Shown: positions 2,954 to 10,757 of the stretch, piece after piece
How the letters are laid out: every line of letters begins with the position of its first letter
Position numbering within the stretch: the first letter of the stretch is position 1
Assembly (NCBI GenBank): GCA_025201805.1
Contig: MU619361.1
Coordinates: 61,990 to 94,516 of the forward strand
Direction: 5' to 3'
Length of the DNA stretch: 32,527 bases
DNA from: Parasitella parasitica NRRL 2501
Lineage: Eukaryota > Fungi > Mucoromycota
Program-made: the position numbers and the translations under genes
The notes under the pieces: model-generated
What the model was told of the DNA's origin: nothing
Database searches by the model: none
Seen by the model: the letters and a program-made list of their open reading frames with translations, nothing else

Positions 2954-5078
2954 CTATTCTTGCTTTTTGCTATTGTTGGTAACTGTATTTTCAATGAATT
3001 TTATGAACCTTTGGCCATATAAATCTGGTTTAATCGCAGAAATGGTAGTCTAAGCAAGAAAATTTAGCATTTACTTGGTATTTCTTGATTATTTTTTTTT
3101 TACCTTGTTTTGAGTAAAACTTTTTATAAAATGTTCGCCTTTTTTGACATAGTTATAAGGAGTTAATATGTCGATTACGCCTAGAAAATAAAGCTTGTCT
3201 GTGGTTTGATTATTTTCATTTGTTGATTTGAATCCACCATCTTCCGAGTAAAATACGCAATATTTCCTTTCATCAGAGGGTGTTTCTGGCAGCTGGGATG
3301 AATCTAACTGAACGGGATTTGCATGAAGAATTGCTTTTCTGACAATATCTGCTTTGCTTTCTCGTCTGCCATTTCGCGTTGATAAAGACCTATCTAGGCT
3401 CTTTGTGTGAGGCTATATTGATTGGCTTAGTGAGATGATGGAGACGTTCAGTTTTACTGCTCTATTACCGTTACAAAGTGGAGATGAGTGTCTCGAATCC
3501 CCTCTGTATTTCCTCTCTTACTATCATGTATGCCAATCAATAAACTATAATCCATGATGTTCAGCGCTGATAGTAAAGCAACATCTTTGTGCAATTGAGA
3601 GAGAAATATGTTTTTTTTGGTCGATCCAAATTCTAGCCTTTTGTTTTTTTCAACCCAATTCAAATCTTTGAGAACAGCATGTGGATTCTTTTGTATTTCC
3701 TCTTCAGTTGTCACTCGCCCAAATGTTGACCCCTTCAAATCGTACGTTTCATGTACATCTTTGTTGCTGGGAAAGACATTTCCCATCACTACGAAATGGA
3801 TCTTTCGTCCATGCGGTAACTTGATGCGATGTAATCCATAAAAACGGCAGAGTAGAGTGTTGGCGTTTTCGCAGACATGCTATATAAAATTCAGGTATAA
3901 GCTTAGATTGCAGAAAATTTGATTTGGGATAGCAGCATAGGCTCTTCCCCTTGAAACAACTAATTACCTCGTAATACTGCTTCAATATTTTGCGCATAAA
4001 TTTGTGCTCTGAATGATGAATCGTCTTGATAATAAATCGGTAGTCTCTCGAATAGTAAAAGAAGCTGCCACTTTTGCCAGGAGAGCCTAGCTCTGACAAG
4101 ATGTACTTGTTTGTCAGAGACATCTGTATAACCGCGCATCAGCACCATTTTTCACAATATATTCTCGACAACATTTTACCATATAATCAGCAGGATCAAC
4201 ATGAAATTTTTCTCGAAGATATCGAAATACCCAAGGAGAATAATCTTTGAATTTAAAATCGTACTTGACGCCGGGCGTTAACTCATTTCCAGTTCTATAT
4301 TGCGACTATTTAGCCCACATCAAGCGCTACCGATAAGCAAAACTAAATCTTACACATCAAACACTAATTTATGTGCTGCGGAAAAGTCATCATGGACTAA
4401 ATCTTTACGAATTTTGGCAGACACTCGACCGACCTAAAGTAGAGTGTATCAGTCATGTGCTTGTGATGTCTTGAGGAGGTATTTCTTACTGCAATTCGAA
4501 TGCCTGTCAACATGTCGTACCTGATATAAGGAAAACAAGTCAAAAAAACACATCCAAATTTATATATACAGTAGATGCACAAAAATCTCATACATCAAAT
4601 GGTAGTTACGATGTCCTTCTGATACACGAGTGCCAATCACTACACGATCTTCATCTTCATCATTGCCATATTCGCTATCATCTCCTAAATCGGTGCTTAG
4701 TAGTCTTTTAGATATTCGACGAGCTTGTCTTCTGGCTTTGATCTCTGTTTCCAATGCCACTTGCTCATCGGCATTCAATGTTCCTAAATCGGGGATTGTT
4801 GTACGACGTCGTCCTTGCAGCTGCTGTTGATGTCGTCGATAATGGGTATCCGAGATGATCGACGACCTTCGATCATTTGCAAGTGGTAAAGGGCTCGATT
4901 GAATGTATTCTAATGGGTATAATATAGGCGAAATTGGCACTGATTTCCTTCTGTTGGGCCACGGCCTAGTTGTTGTCTCTTGGTCCAATGGCCCAATATC
5001 GTTGTTTGTGTTGGCAACATCTAATTTAATGTCGTCGGAGAGTTGTGTTTGGCTATGTATTGTTGTCGACATCTCCAT
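2954..5078 (-). CDS. MSS4: Phosphatidylinositol-4-phosphate 5-kinase (Mss4/Its3 family)
   Basis: Exons 5078-4594, 4520-4490, 4433-4354, 4294-4180, 4123-3968, 3879-3469, 3412-3104, 3049-2954. Motifs [65 protein letters not shown]. Confidence 0.93.
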
Positions 5079-5276
5079 TTAAAGCAAATACTGCTAAAAT
5101 GGTGTTTTAGGAGAAAGAAAAGAGTGGAAGAAAGAGAAAGAAAAGGAGTTGTTTATAATGAACAGATAGCAGCTTATACAAAATATACAACAACTTGAGA
5201 TGAAATCTCTCGGTGACTATTAATAAAATTCATTGTATTCTCTATTTAGACATGTAGACCGAAAATGGATCTGCTA

Positions 5277-5470
5277 CAGCTGAAGAAAATAGGTTGGGCC
5301 ACACAAAAAACATTTTGGGCCATGTCAAAAAAAACTGGTCCACCAATTTTGATTCAAGACACTAATATTGAAAGTGGGACAACCAAGGAAATTTGGGACA
5401 CTTCTTTGAAAATGGGTCACTTTTTTCAAAGTGGGGCATTCAATTAAAAGTGAAGATTTAATAGTTTTAT
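5277..5470 (+). repeat. Left terminal inverted repeat with ~19-21-bp subrepeats
   Basis: Reverse complement of 10354-10592 apart from a 38-bp and an 11-bp indel and a short divergent patch. TGGGNCA-like cores at 5295, 5316, 5336, 5375, 5394, 5413, 5432. Confidence 0.9.
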
Positions 5471-5471
5471 A

Positions 5472-6080
5472 CAGTGTTTTCCTTTCATTTTCAGACTTTT
5501 TGAAATTTTTTTCGGACTTTTAGATTTTAAATTCAGACACAAATTTTTATTTTTCAGACTAACAAAAGTTGCTTTTCAGATTTTGCGATTGAAAAAATCA
5601 GACTTTTATTATGCCCATATTCAGATTCTTTACAAATATATTTGGACTTAACATAGCAAAAGTTCTTTTGATAAACATCTATCCCAAAATGTTTTGAATG
5701 TTTAATCCAACTTTGACAATCTTCAGCAGTAACAGTAGCGCATGCAGCAGCAATTCTGGGTGTAAGCTGATCTACCTTACTCAATTGATGTCTTTTAGTA
5801 TTTTTCTTGACTTTTGCTCAACACTCTTCAACAGGATTAAGAAATGGTGAGTAAGGTGGTGGAAAAAGAGGCTTATAACCACGTTTGTTAATTGCTTCTA
5901 TAACAAAATCAGAGTGATGAATCCTGCAATTGTCCATCACAATGAAAACTCCTTTTTTGTTCTGTCTATCTAAAATGTCCATAGTTGCTTCAATAAATTT
6001 CACAACATGACAGGCTGTTTTACCTTTTTTCACCTTTGGCTTGGAATCTTCTTCTGTGTTCGCTTTTCTTTTTCTTTTTC
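5472..6080 (-). mobile_element. Truncated nested Tc1/IS630-like element (3' end plus transposase C-terminus)
   Basis: Begins TA|CAGTG at 5470-5476 (classic Tc1 terminus), followed by a periodic TCAGAY array and the transposase remnant. The matching opposite end was not found in the window. Confidence 0.7.
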
Positions 6081-6318
6081 TACCACCTTACTCGCCATTT
6101 CTTAATCCTGTTGAAGAGTGTTGGGCAAAAGTCAAGAAAAATACTAGAAGACATCAATTGAGTAAGGTAGATCAGCTTACACCCAGAATTGCTGCTGCAT
6201 GCGCTACTGTTACTGCTGAAGATTGTCAAAGTTGGATTAAACATTCAAAACATTTTGGGATAGATGTTTATCAAAAGAACTTTTGCAATTTTAAGTCCAA
6301 ATATATTTGTAAAGAATC
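5624..6318. repeat. Inverted duplication: 246-bp arms (5624-5869 and 6073-6318) with 203-bp loop
   Basis: Arms are reverse complements with 6 mismatches by manual count; the same peptide appears on both strands in the ORF track. Confidence 0.92.
5648..6080 (-). pseudogene. DD34E transposase C-terminal remnant (DDE_3-like)
   Basis: KRKANTEEDSKPKVKKG...FIVMDNCRIHH...PPYSPFLNPVEEC, with 34 residues between D and E. TGG>TGA stop at 5818-5820. A 1-nt deletion near 5690 breaks the HSKTFWDRCL frame; corrected stop at 5648. Confidence 0.88.
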
Positions 6319-7655
6319 CCTATCAAAAAGCCGCCGTTTTTTTAAAGTCAGAAATGATTTTTTAGATGATTATCTGTAGAAAGCTCATCATTCTTATGGG
6401 TTTGTACTAATAAACAGATCACAAAAACTTGATAATAGCTTCTTGGTGTTATATAATACTATTATTCATAAAAAAACTGGAAAAAACTAAAAAATTGGGA
6501 TCAATAGCAAGTGTTTCCACCCTTTGCATCAATTACAGCCTCACACCTTCTAGGCATGGATCTGATCAGTTTGTCAAAGGCATCCATATCAATCTTGACC
6601 CATTCTGACTCAAGATATTTTCTGAGGTCTTTTGGGTTATTGATTAAGTGCCTTTTGACCATAGCCCAGACATGTTCGATAGGATTAAGGTCTGAGCTGT
6701 TGGCGGGCCAGAAATCGAACCCCTTAATCATGGCTCTTTTTTTTCCACCATGTTGTGTACGTCCCTGTATGAAGGGTCGCATTGTCTTCCATAAATATGT
6801 GTTCGTAAGTAGGATTGTCAGGCTTAAGTTTTTGAAGCCAGGAAACAAAATTCTCAGACAAGCAGTTTACATAGACATCTTGATCGACTGTGCCGTCCAA
6901 GAAGACGAGAGGACCTAGTCTACCTGCCACAAAACAGCTCCAAACCATTACAGATCCGCCGCCGAACTTCTTAACAGGTACTATATTATCAGGATTGTAC
7001 TTTTCGTTAACGAGTCTGATAACTCGTAAGTTACCATCATTTCATGCTACTCGATATCTCGACTCATCTAACCAAATTACTTGCTTCCATTGTTCGAAAG
7101 TCCCATTTTTCTTATTTTCCGCCCAAAGCAAGCGGTTTTCGATCTGAGATTCACTCAGAGCTGGCTTACGAGCTGGTACACGAGAATGAAGGCCCATACT
7201 ATCAAGAGCCTTCATCATTGTATTGCGAGAAACATCAATACTTACCGAGTGAAGATTTGATAGATGGTGCGTCAAAGGCTTAAAGGGCTGAGCTTTAACG
7301 CTACGGCTCAAGAACCTATTATTCCGCTCAGACATAGCTGGAGGACGGCCAGTTCGTTTGCTCTCATACAGTGTAGTGCCGTTAGTGTTGTATCGAGTCA
7401 TAGCGTCTCTAATGGTGCTAATTTGAATCTCGGAAATTTCGGAGATTTTTAGAGGATGATTGATGTCTGCTTTTAACATGCCTGCGATCATCCCTAAATC
7501 ATAATCAGTAAGCTGTTTTCTTTTATTTTGAGTATTTGAGCTAGACATGGCGTTTATTTTGATATTTGGAAGTTAAAAAATAAGATATCTGAAAGGGACA
7601 GGAGCAGTTTATGAGAATGAAGGATAGAAAAACGGTGACTTTTTGATAGGGGGTT
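6318..7655 (-). mobile_element. Tc1-family transposon with short TIRs; left terminus clipped
   Basis: CCCTATCAAAAAGCCGCCGTTTTT (from 6318) vs AAAAACGGTGACTTTTTGATAGGG (7628-7651), 2 mismatches. Right end GATAGGGGGTT followed by TA at 7656-7657. Confidence 0.85.
6501..7548 (-). pseudogene. Tc1-like transposase (DD35E after frameshift correction), inactivated
   Basis: HTH region and RTGRP linker, ARKPAL, W-x-DES, MVWSCF, EDNA..H, WPANSSDLNPIEHVW, SMPRRCEAVIDAKGGNT. In-frame TGA at 7042-7044 and a +1 frameshift in an A8 run near 6740. Confidence 0.92.
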
Positions 7656-7673
7656 TATGTATGAATACACAAC

Positions 7674-8127
7674 CACACATTTCATTCGTGCATACGACTA
7701 ACAGGCTCCATTGCTCCATTAATCATATACACAAAGTTTGCTATAATAGTAAAGTGATCTTTAATGAGGTGTCACTCAACAATAAAAGACCGTTCCTGTC
7801 CTCTACTAAGATTACTTCATAAAGAAGTAAACCTCAGACCGCCATGTCTGGAACAGCCAATGTGTGTTGAAATAAACACGAAGAGCAAATACCCATAAAC
7901 ACTAAGTATATTGATGTGTACAATATATTTTAGCCTACACACATTTCATTCGTGCATACGACTAACAGGCTCCATTGCTCCATTAATCATATACACAAAG
8001 TTTGCTATCATAGTAAAGTGATCTTTAATGAGGTATCACCCAACAATAAAAGACCGTTCCTGTCCTCTACTAAGATTACTTCATAAAGAAGTAAACCTCA
8101 GACCGCCATGTCTGGAATAGCCAATGT
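7674..8127. repeat. Direct repeat pair, 190 bp each (7674-7863, 7938-8127), 74-bp spacer
   Basis: Copies align without gaps at offset 264 with 4 substitutions. Confidence 0.92.
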
Positions 8128-8509
8128 ATGATATAATGATGGTGTTATCTATGGAATAAACAATTGAAAAATATACTGAGTGAAAAAATATGTTAGTTTT
8201 TTTAAATAAAAAATGGAGCAATAGACTTAGTATACTTATCAGCTAATAAAAACAAATTTTTGAATACAGTATTTGTATTGTATAACTATTTGTATGATAT
8301 ATACTATAGGAAAGTGTCTAAGTTTGAACTAGGAAAAAGAAAGTTACAAGGGTTGAGTAAAAAATAAAAATAAAAATACTACGTACATTCCTAGGAATCC
8401 CGCGCCTACTTCGACGTCACAATTTTATTTTTGGAGAGTGTTCTTGGAGCACCCGCAGTATTATCCTAATTTTTGGCATCAACAAAATTTTTCCACCTCT
8501 CTTCACAAA

Positions 8510-10186
8510 ATGACTGAAAACCCCCAAGTGCAATGGATTTTAAAGAATTACGATGGTGACGGGACATTCCCCTCTTTGAGATTTGCCAAGTTCTCAAAAG
8601 CAGAAAACATAAAAACTTGTGAAAAGATCTTTAAGGATGCGGTGGATGACATCGCGTCGTTATCGATCAAACAATACCAAAATCATTCCAAATGGATCAA
8701 ATGGTCGCGACAAGTAAAGAAACAGCAATACGAAGTATGTATAATACTTATTTGTCACTGTTAAAAGCAAGTAATTGTTATTAACTTACATTTCCTTCCT
8801 TAGGTATTAAGCACTATTACGGTTAAGCAATATTTTTATCAGCAAATGCGTAAAAATATCCTTCTAGAAAAAATGCTTTTTGACGCAAGACAGGAAATGA
8901 GCGTGATAAAAAATGCTAACAATATTGAAGAAATCACTGGTGATTCGAATAATGAGCAAGATGAAACATTAAACAGCGAAATTCCAACGGATACTGAAGA
9001 AGATAACTCAAGACACAATCATGATCAACTTGATAATAACGAGAAGTGGTTTCTTTCAACTGGAAAATGCGTAGATGATGAATTGTTCATATTTGGAAAG
9101 CAGTGTAACTTCGACCACTCTAGCAAGTCTATGATAATTGACATTGACGACAACAATTATGATTTGTACAATGTATTCACCCCTACTGAAGTCAACGAAA
9201 TTCGAACATTCAAACCAAAACCATTACCTGTATTGCCCAAAGACATTAAAAAAATCTTAAGCCAATTCAACGTAACGACAAGCAATGAAATCAGACAAAA
9301 GTTGGGCGAGATATCAACATTCTCCAATAAATTCAATTATAAGAGCCAACATGATAACGATTGGATTGTGTTCACCATCTATTCATTGTTACGTCAATAC
9401 GAATCAGGCAACTTCTCAAAGTCACATCTGGAGCAATGGCCAGAGTCACGTTTGGTCAATGTTCGAATCAGTTTTTGAAGCAGAGGATAAGTTGGAAGCG
9501 GTTGTGTAAGTTATTGATAATTCCTATCTAAAAAATCGTTTATAAATTCGCATAGTGGCGAGCCTATGAGCTTTGCTTCGAAAACACGAAAAAACAAACA
9601 AAGAACTATCTCGGCGGTTGAAAAAATGCAATTTAGTAAGATGGGCCGTAAGATGGATCTAATATTCCGCACCTGTACCAGCACACATTCAATTCCAATG
9701 GAATTCGGCGCATCAGAGACTGGAAAGTTGATGGAAGGCAACCATTCCACAAAATACATGGAAGAAGGTCTTGTAAAATTGCCAAAGACTCTCAAAGACA
9801 TGTTGGATCAGTTGGTTATACGCTCAAACCACGACAATGACATCATGTCAAAATTGAGAGTCGTCGGTCTCGTACATTCAGGATTATCATCGACATTATT
9901 ACAAGCTGACAGACCCAGCAGATATATAACAAGAATCGCAAGATTCAAAACCCTTTATATTAGTGATAATATCAACACGTTTTTTCAGACTGTAATCCCA
10001 ACTCTATGCTCGGCTATCGTTGTTCGTGAAATCGTCAAAGAATCCCTGAATCTTGTCAATTCTCCACGCGAAAGCGATAATGAGGACTGGTTAGACGATT
10101 GCTTGACAAGTACAGTCAGCACAATAATTTCTGAGACCTCCTCATCACCTCACCGACACACAAAGAGAACCAAATATAACTGCTAG
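8510..10186 (+). pseudogene. Spliced cargo gene of unknown function with putative PD-(D/E)XK restriction-endonuclease-like C-terminal domain; one frameshift
   Basis: Exons 8510-8734, 8804-9505, 9556-10186 (GTATGT/TAG, GTAAGT/TAG). Frame break at ~9440 (EQW|c|QSHVW). Motif order GE..S.AS..RKN, GRKMDLIFR, EFGASETGK, KLPKTLKDML is compatible with an REase core (inference). Confidence 0.7.
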
Positions 10187-10353
10187 ATATCATTAAAATC
10201 ATCCGAAAAAAAAATGTATACCAAATAACTTTATCTTAAGACAATGAAACGAAAACTAAGATATGTATTATAACTGAAAGTACAGAAAAAGAAATAGTTT
10301 ATACAAACCGAATTAATAACGTGTAATTTGAACAATAAAACACATGTTATACA

Positions 10354-10592
10354 ATAAAACTATTAAATCTTCATATTGTTGTCACTTTTAATTGAAAGCC
10401 CCACTTTGAAAAAAGTGACCCATTTTCAAGCAGGTGTCCTGCTTTCAACTAAGTGCCCCATTTTCAAAGAAGTGTCCCAAATTTCCTTAGTTGTCCCACT
10501 TTCAATATTAGTGTCTTGAATTTCTCTGGTTGTCCCATTTTTGACATGGCCCAAAATGTTTTTTGTGTGGCCCAACCTATTTTCTTCAGCTG
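10354..10592 (-). repeat. Right terminal inverted repeat
   Basis: Inverted copy of 5277-5470 with two extra 19-bp units. Confidence 0.9.
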
Positions 10593-10757
10593 TAACATGT
10601 ATGATTACATTATTATGCGGTACCCCCCAATTAATACCACCACCCGTTCTCTCATGCAGAATTGTATTTCTCATGATCTAGTTAGTATATAGCGTCTTCC
10701 CTTTGCTTTCTTTTGCTTTACTTTTTCTTCTTTTCTAATTTTTTTTTAACAACTGGC

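Follow-up and report, generated by a model that had tools for sequence, protein, structure and literature searches.

A putative PD-(D/E)XK nuclease gene as the native gene of a TA-flanked inverted-repeat element in Parasitella parasitica

Eukaryotic cut-and-paste transposons are thought to depend on DDE transposases, and Fanzor showed that element-serving nucleases can ride along with them; Bao and Jurka reportedly described the Fanzor1 nuclease in Mariner/Tc1 elements in 2013. For a restriction fold in transposition the sole precedent known to us is TnsA, which partners TnsB, a DDE protein whose gene also lies in the Tn7 element. Restriction-endonuclease (REase) domains are reportedly also carried by Crinkler (CR) effectors (Zhang et al. 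2016, through PMC5289972). Here we analysed a 32,527-nt stretch of the Parasitella parasitica genome (C125:61990-94516; the window), in which an element bounded by long terminal inverted repeats (TIRs) has a single native gene, encoding a putative PD-(D/E)XK nuclease; genome searches covered the 32.8-Mb assembly of this fungus. The window element is a dead member of a Mucorales lineage of TIR DNA transposons that target TA. We lean modestly towards the reading that this lineage is a non-autonomous Tc1/mariner-type element, moved in trans, which carries an accessory nuclease gene under selection. The pairing of inverted-repeat ends with this gene recurs in other Mucorales, and our literature searches found no description of the protein family or of such elements. 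The boundaries of the element and the structure of its gene, in window coordinates, are as follows.

5277-10592 (5316 bp): whole element, TA-flanked, with CAG...CTG ends
5275-5276, no strand: left copy of the TA target-site duplication (sequence)
5277-5470, + strand: left TIR, opening with CAGCTGAAGAAAATAGGTTGGG, with subterminal 19-nt repeats at 5394-5435 (inverted-repeat search, alignment)
8510-8734, + strand: exon 1, predicted N-terminal helical domain (sequence, intact relatives)
8735-8803, + strand: intron GTATGT..TAG (sequence, intact relatives)
8804-9505, + strand: exon 2, predicted helical region and start of the nuclease domain, with a frameshift at ~9440 (sequence, intact relatives)
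9506-9555, + strand: intron GTAAGT..TAG (sequence, intact relatives)
9556-10186, + strand: exon 3, predicted PD-(D/E)XK core (GE.., ..MDLIFR, MEFGASE, KLPKTLKDML), stop codon at 10184-10186 (sequence, intact relatives)
10354-10592, - strand: right TIR; subterminal repeats of 19 and 39 nt lie at 10400-10541 (inverted-repeat search, alignment)
10593-10594, no strand: right copy of the TA target-site duplication (sequence)

The inverted-repeat search of the window returned the TIR arms as 5272-5470 and 10354-10597, and the junctions read TA/CAGCTG...CAGCTG/TA. When 5277-5470 was aligned globally to the reverse-complemented 10354-10592, the arms, 194 and 239 nt long, showed 179 matches, and they differ in length because of 38- and 11-nt indels in the tandem subterminal 19-nt repeats. 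The best flank-to-flank inverted-repeat score was 226, whereas 12 control positions of this genome scored 28-36. These results confirm the TA-flanked CAG...CTG termini and the TIRs of about 200-240 bp given in a preliminary description of this locus. Judged by their sequence, the ends are Tc1/mariner-like, with a TA duplication, CAG termini and long TIRs that contain repeated subterminal motifs. The spliced gene which that description had placed at 8510-10186, near the right TIR, was also found, with three exons and a stop codon 168 bp ahead of the TIR. In the assembly sequence a frame shift at ~9440 falls between the W and the Q of the conserved EQW(Y)QSH motif (EQWYQSH in intact relatives); the window exons were searched one by one, and the alignments and structure predictions relied on intact relatives.

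The element lies between a PIP5K gene and an MFS transporter gene (spacing 198 + 5316 + 162 bp). Their orthologues in Mucor velutinosus are divergently transcribed and 258 bp apart, and the family gene is absent within 22 kb around them. This synteny, used in answer to the question of an empty site after a search brought up no second Parasitella strain, implies that the nuclease gene of the window is not a syntenic host gene. The element is inserted into the short divergent promoter region between the PIP5K and MFS genes.

Six-frame searches of the Parasitella genome revealed about 20 loci of the gene family, most of them with stops; the C188 locus has an open frame of 400 amino acids (403 in the six-frame searches) and is annotated as a 533-amino-acid protein, P0001. 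Using a profile of 17 homologues, we obtained 1636 cluster representatives at E <= 0.001 and 848 at E <= 1e-10. The sampled members come from Mucorales, Glomeromycotina (Rhizophagus, Ambispora, Geosiphon, Diversispora, Entrophospora), Endogonales and Umbelopsis, and all are annotated as hypothetical. Pfam returned no real family for the window exons, P0001, ten long relatives or 50 alignment members, and a PDB sequence search gave no match for the family protein. The predicted protein has ~530 amino acids: a helical domain at the N-terminus is joined through an acidic linker to a PD-(D/E)XK fold at the C-terminus.

A first structure prediction, based on 17 sequences, had a mean predicted local distance difference test (pLDDT) score of 45.8 and was confident only in the N-terminal 90 residues, a small helical bundle for which the structural search gave no meaningful match (Z at most 5.3). 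With a 50-sequence alignment, residues 150-510 of P0001 were modelled at pLDDT 92.9 and a predicted template-modelling score (pTM) of 0.91. Foldseek against the PDB yielded nothing at E <= 0.001, only weak nuclease-like hits; in an exhaustive VIA structural search, model residues 120-340 showed a restriction-endonuclease fold. The best matches were the nuclease domain of BpuSI (3s1s_A; Z 10.2, root-mean-square deviation 3.5, 155 aligned residues) and DrdV (7lo5_A; Z 10.1), followed by HsdR, TT1808, BbvCI, EcoRI, NucC and NgoMIV, and in the same search the mitoribosomal proteins mL37 and mS30 obtained Z scores similar to those of the restriction enzymes over a longer aligned stretch. Conservation reaches at least 90% at five residues (E175, D207, E222, E227 and K247, model numbering), all of which the window copy retains; the acidic residues D207, E222 and E227 lie on strands 2 and 3, and K247 on the following helix. 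The model of the paralogue, with Z of about 10 to BpuSI and DrdV, bears out the earlier suggestion of a PD-(D/E)XK protein: the C-terminal domain is predicted to have this fold and the protein is a putative nuclease. A RuvC-like nuclease with a zinc ribbon did not appear among the Pfam matches of the family protein, whose predicted fold is REase-like.

Among predicted structures, the neighbours of the model were fungal PDDEXK_12 (TM 0.56) and a cluster partly annotated as Crinkler (TM 0.51). A link to Crinkler proteins, raised in the preliminary description, is retained as this weak structural resemblance; no Crinkler/ubiquitin-like (Ubl) header was found, and Pfam gave no Crinkler match in the family proteins scanned. 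The same neighbours bear on the possibility of passive cargo, in which the gene would serve the fungus, for example as a nuclease of toxin, defence or Crinkler type, would be unrelated in function to the element, and would have been captured once by a Tc1/mariner-derived vehicle that did no more than spread it. Such cargo would agree with the resemblance to both neighbours, with the strong expansion of the family in Glomeromycotina, and with the intact copies in C188 and Pilaira, which have no clear TIRs, as if immobilised or domesticated. We nevertheless think it unlikely: there is neither a Crinkler header nor a Pfam match, most copies in the Parasitella genome are pseudogenes, as with transposon genes, and the association with TIRs recurs in deeply diverged paralogues whose TIR sequences are unrelated, which argues against a single capture.

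This recurrence is seen in four paralogues of the same genome, 35-45% identical in protein sequence, each of which lies alone inside an inverted-repeat pair 2.8-4.3 kb apart, with inverted-repeat scores of 116 (L029), 104 (L030), 67 (L032) and 65 (L033) over a background of 28-36. A Rhizopus arrhizus copy (L041) has the same layout, with a score of 115 and TA/CAGTGCTTCCACC at both ends. No DDE similarity was found in the four sibling elements or in L041. TA is present at 10 of the 12 ends of the six elements, against a background frequency of 7.5% (binomial p ~3e-10), a count to be read with the caveat that the alignment which places the ends can absorb a palindromic TA; it flanks both sides of the window element, L030, L033 and L041, and one side of L029 and L032. 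The termini are of the CAG type in the window element (CAGCTG...), in L041 (TACAGTGCTTCCACC) and in L030 (TACTGTGCTTCC), and differ from it in L029, L032 and L033. Three contigs from R. delemar or metagenomes contain a truncated deletion derivative of the window element, in which a piece of the TIR is followed by exon 2 (93% DNA identity) and then by the 3′ end with the inner right TIR (81-83%). Gene and TIRs move as one unit, and in Rhizopus, another genus, they are again found together.

The whole 194-nt window TIR is single-copy in the genome by BLAST, as would fit a host gene that happens to stand between two independent ends of miniature inverted-repeat elements (MITEs). This explanation is refuted by several lines of evidence: over ~190 nt the arms match as a properly inverted pair with a TA at either side, Mucor velutinosus lacks the gene in the orthologous intergenic region, the same TIR pieces are joined to the same gene in R. 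delemar, and five other family genes are bracketed likewise. We looked both for a syntenic host gene beside TIR copies that lack it and for a predicted fold other than that of a REase, and found neither.

The search for relatives of the TIR, which failed for the whole arm, succeeded for its terminal 24-mer, with 48 genome matches at up to 3 mismatches and none for the reversed control. Among them are a 249-bp MITE (C9:221993-222241) and a homogeneous young subfamily ending in TACAGTTGACGAAACTAGGTTGGG, with pairs 2.6-3.9 kb apart. Multi-copy elements of 3.3-3.9 kb with identical 24-nt TACAGTTGACGAAACTAGGTTGGG termini were located at C25:4799-8559, C170:11694-15376, C170:40504-43991, C11:291172-294846, C36:130947-134887, C59:170480-174298, C75:146443-149782, C105:15484-19400 and C108:102541-106361; a profile search did not find the family gene in the multi-copy elements, which may carry a DDE gene outside the 150 of 388 candidates that the DDE_3 search scored. 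The TIR type of the sibling L030 (TACTGTGCTTCCAC) has at least 40 copies in the genome, and its 1.4-1.9-kb members overlap DDE_3 matches (e.g., C33:149430 and C187:39848) in a genome search that scored 150 of 388 candidates. The L030 lineage therefore shares its ends with autonomous Tc1/mariner elements, and the TIRs of both L030 and L041 are homologous to those of DDE_3-encoding elements.

The preliminary description had offered two readings, a non-autonomous vehicle with a REase cargo and, more speculatively, a role of the protein in mobility or selfish maintenance. The Tc1/mariner-like ends and the DDE_3 gene encoded within the TIR family of one sibling favour the former. The element, having no transposase of its own, would depend on a Tc1/mariner DDE transposase acting in trans, which would recognise its ends and cut and paste it, and the element-borne accessory nuclease gene would be kept by selection. 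By analogy with TnpB/Fanzor, the most plausible role of the nuclease would be to cut DNA so that the element is more readily retained or copied. The latter reading gains support, in a speculative sense, from the long co-divergence of the gene with private TIRs and from purifying selection.

The evidence for selection comes from comparisons between genera. The R. arrhizus and Pilaira anomala copies are ~90% identical in DNA, with dS (synonymous divergence) of 0.216, dN (nonsynonymous divergence) of 0.063 and dN/dS of 0.29 over 506 codons, the ratio among copies that had been proposed as a check; on such codon comparisons the family gene appears to be under purifying selection. Between exon 2 of the window and the R. 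delemar fossil dS is 0.149. The host genes that flank the element share only 60-69% protein identity between Parasitella and Mucor, which are the closer pair. Since the similarity of the element across families is far above the level of vertical descent, we infer that it was transferred horizontally among Mucorales. Parasitella is a mycoparasitic member of this order, and its fusion parasitism on other Mucorales is a plausible transfer route. A bolder proposal gives the family protein an active part in transposition, as either a restriction-fold transposase that defines a new superfamily of eukaryotic DNA transposons or a protein-guided 'retention' nuclease with a TnpB/Fanzor-like role for Tc1/mariner-type elements, which spreads horizontally among Mucorales, perhaps via the fusion parasitism of Parasitella; we put this forward tentatively and consider it doubtful.

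In its strongest form, this would be a new class of TIR transposons in eukaryotes for which the PD-(D/E)XK protein itself acts as transposase or as an indispensable cleavage subunit, with the N-terminal domain binding the subterminal repeats and the nuclease domain cutting the TA-flanked ends. At least six TIR-bounded elements (2.8-4.4 kb), which show no DDE similarity, have the family gene as their sole gene, and co-evolution of ends and protein would account for the private TIRs that each paralogue has at an identity of only 35-45%; purifying selection, the transfer of TIRs and gene together between genera and the very large size of the family, with its conserved N-terminal domain, point the same way. 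The ends and the target site are, however, typical of Tc1/mariner, including the homology of the L030 and L041 TIRs to those of DDE_3 elements, and each gene-bearing lineage is single-copy in the genome, where no burst of gene-bearing copies was seen. Restriction folds hydrolyse DNA, TnsA of Tn7 needs the DDE protein TnsB, and to our knowledge no restriction-fold nuclease performs strand transfer alone. Taken together, these points make a transposase of this kind quite unlikely.

Several observations weigh against our preferred reading, that of a non-autonomous Tc1/mariner-type element with an accessory nuclease gene. Four of the five TIR pairs in the genome are private to their element, which fits a gene and ends that co-evolve as an autonomous unit, and the DDE_3 search named no partner transposase for the window TIR among the 150 of 388 candidates scored. 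Neither the only intact copy in the genome (C188, P0001) nor the intact Pilaira copy has convincing TIRs, and in the distant members from Geosiphon, Radiomyces and Jimgerdemannia the bracketing by TIRs is not clear-cut. The nuclease activity is read from the fold, the modelled protein is a paralogue 38% identical to that of the window, and the family does not conserve a lysine where the canonical (D/E)XK motif has one.

Between the left TIR and the gene lie two nested insertions and a pair of direct repeats.

5472-6318, - strand: nested Tc1-type remnant, starting TA/CAGTG, with a DDE_3 fragment and a 246-nt, 98% fold-back (5624-5869 / 6073-6318) (inverted-repeat and Pfam search)
6318-7651, - strand: another nested Tc1-type element; it has an inverted repeat of its own (27 nt) and a frame for HTH_Tnp_Tc3_2 and DDE_3 that stop codons interrupt (inverted-repeat and Pfam search)
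7674-8137, + strand: two direct repeats (7674-7873 and 7938-8137), 96% alike, at least 200 nt each and spaced 264 nt, in the native part upstream of the gene

The DDE sequences of the element are confined to these nested insertions, which have their own ends; the first abuts the inner end of the left TIR, and its fold-back derives from the 3′ part of a Tc1 transposase gene. No close copies of either were found elsewhere in the genome. Because the sibling elements hold the family gene and no DDE, the DDE remnants are later insertions, as had been proposed, and the ~3.1 kb that remain once they are removed agree in size with siblings without a DDE gene (2.8-3.5 kb). With DDE present only in the nested insertions and in none of the siblings, the window element is at most a non-autonomous member of Tc1/mariner. 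It inserted between the PIP5K and MFS genes and later received the two Tc1-type insertions and the frameshift, which left it dead.

Several other loci came up in these searches. Inside a 2.9-kb pair of L030-type TIRs on C161, a 446-amino-acid open frame (L064:1362-2702) shows a D...E-x-Q pattern (VDILLIP...VLIEIQ) and no Pfam match; from its sequence it may be another restriction-fold protein, that is, a second nuclease family in Tc1-type ends. Between L030-type TIR ends there are also open reading frames that resemble the catalytic core of the family at L058:2147-2812 (- strand, C146) and L059:2123-2389 (- strand, C85), the former with 76% probability and E 2e-5 against the family profile (hhalign); both regions are composite, with DDE fragments and pieces recognised by eye as zinc knuckle and helicase. 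About 600 bp from P0001 lies a TA-flanked element (L028:256-3838; C188:25255-28837) with 204-nt TIRs that are 97% alike and start TA/CAGTTTTTCTAC; the C-terminus of its long frame is Fanzor/TnpB-like, with RuvC and a zinc ribbon. In Thamnidium elegans (L070) near-identical 1163-nt repeats (3861-5023 / 7356-8517) surround a family gene, with outward-facing Tc1 ends and DDE fragments. As the 1163-nt inverted repeat contains Tc1 pieces, L070 was dropped as a clean TIR case, and its appearance is that of an inverted duplication more than of a simple TIR. Downstream of the family gene the four R. arrhizus strains L040-L043 are >99% identical over more than 7.7 kb, and upstream of about position 5000, inside the element, their sequence and genes are completely different; this comparison around P0029 was dropped, since a rearrangement hot spot is indistinguishable there from an assembly error. 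The gene model of the R. delemar protein P0013 (623 amino acids) joins the C-terminal end of a pogo-type DDE_1 transposase (Pfam E 1.5e-4) to a family protein, which suggests a neighbouring pogo remnant.

A role of the protein in mobility or retention, if real, would represent a new mechanism and possibly provide a new DNA-cutting tool; if the protein is only cargo, its elements would still explain the spread of a very large orphan family (>1600 sequence clusters) through Mucoromycota. Like TnsA of Tn7, the family protein is a predicted restriction-fold nuclease encoded by a transposon, but the window element has no native DDE gene, and neither a sequence match nor a specific structural match to TnsA was seen. 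As in the Crinkler REase domains, a REase-fold domain occurs in a lineage-expanded eukaryotic family, and a weakly similar structural cluster has the Crinkler Pfam domain in 17% of its members. In contrast to those proteins, the family has no Crinkler/Ubl header, and its gene is the sole occupant of a TIR element rather than one for a secreted modular effector. The predicted core fold matches that of the PD-(D/E)XK superfamily (BpuSI and DrdV; PDDEXK_12, PF20516), with conserved acidic residues on strands 2 and 3; as differences, there is no sequence-level match in Pfam or the PDB, the canonical lysine is not conserved, and the core comes after a helical region of ~120 residues and a distinct N-terminal domain. 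The closest parallel is with the Fanzor-carrying Tc1/mariner elements, one TA-flanked TIR example of which (L028) is present in the same genome. The window element resembles them in its TA duplication, CAG termini and repeated subterminal motifs in the TIRs, and in having a single nuclease gene in place of a DDE transposase. Its passenger, however, has a predicted protein-only PD-(D/E)XK fold and is not a RuvC/TnpB RNA-guided nuclease, so that no guide RNA is implied; it would be a second nuclease fold, unrelated to Fanzor, that serves as the sole gene of TA-targeting TIR elements.

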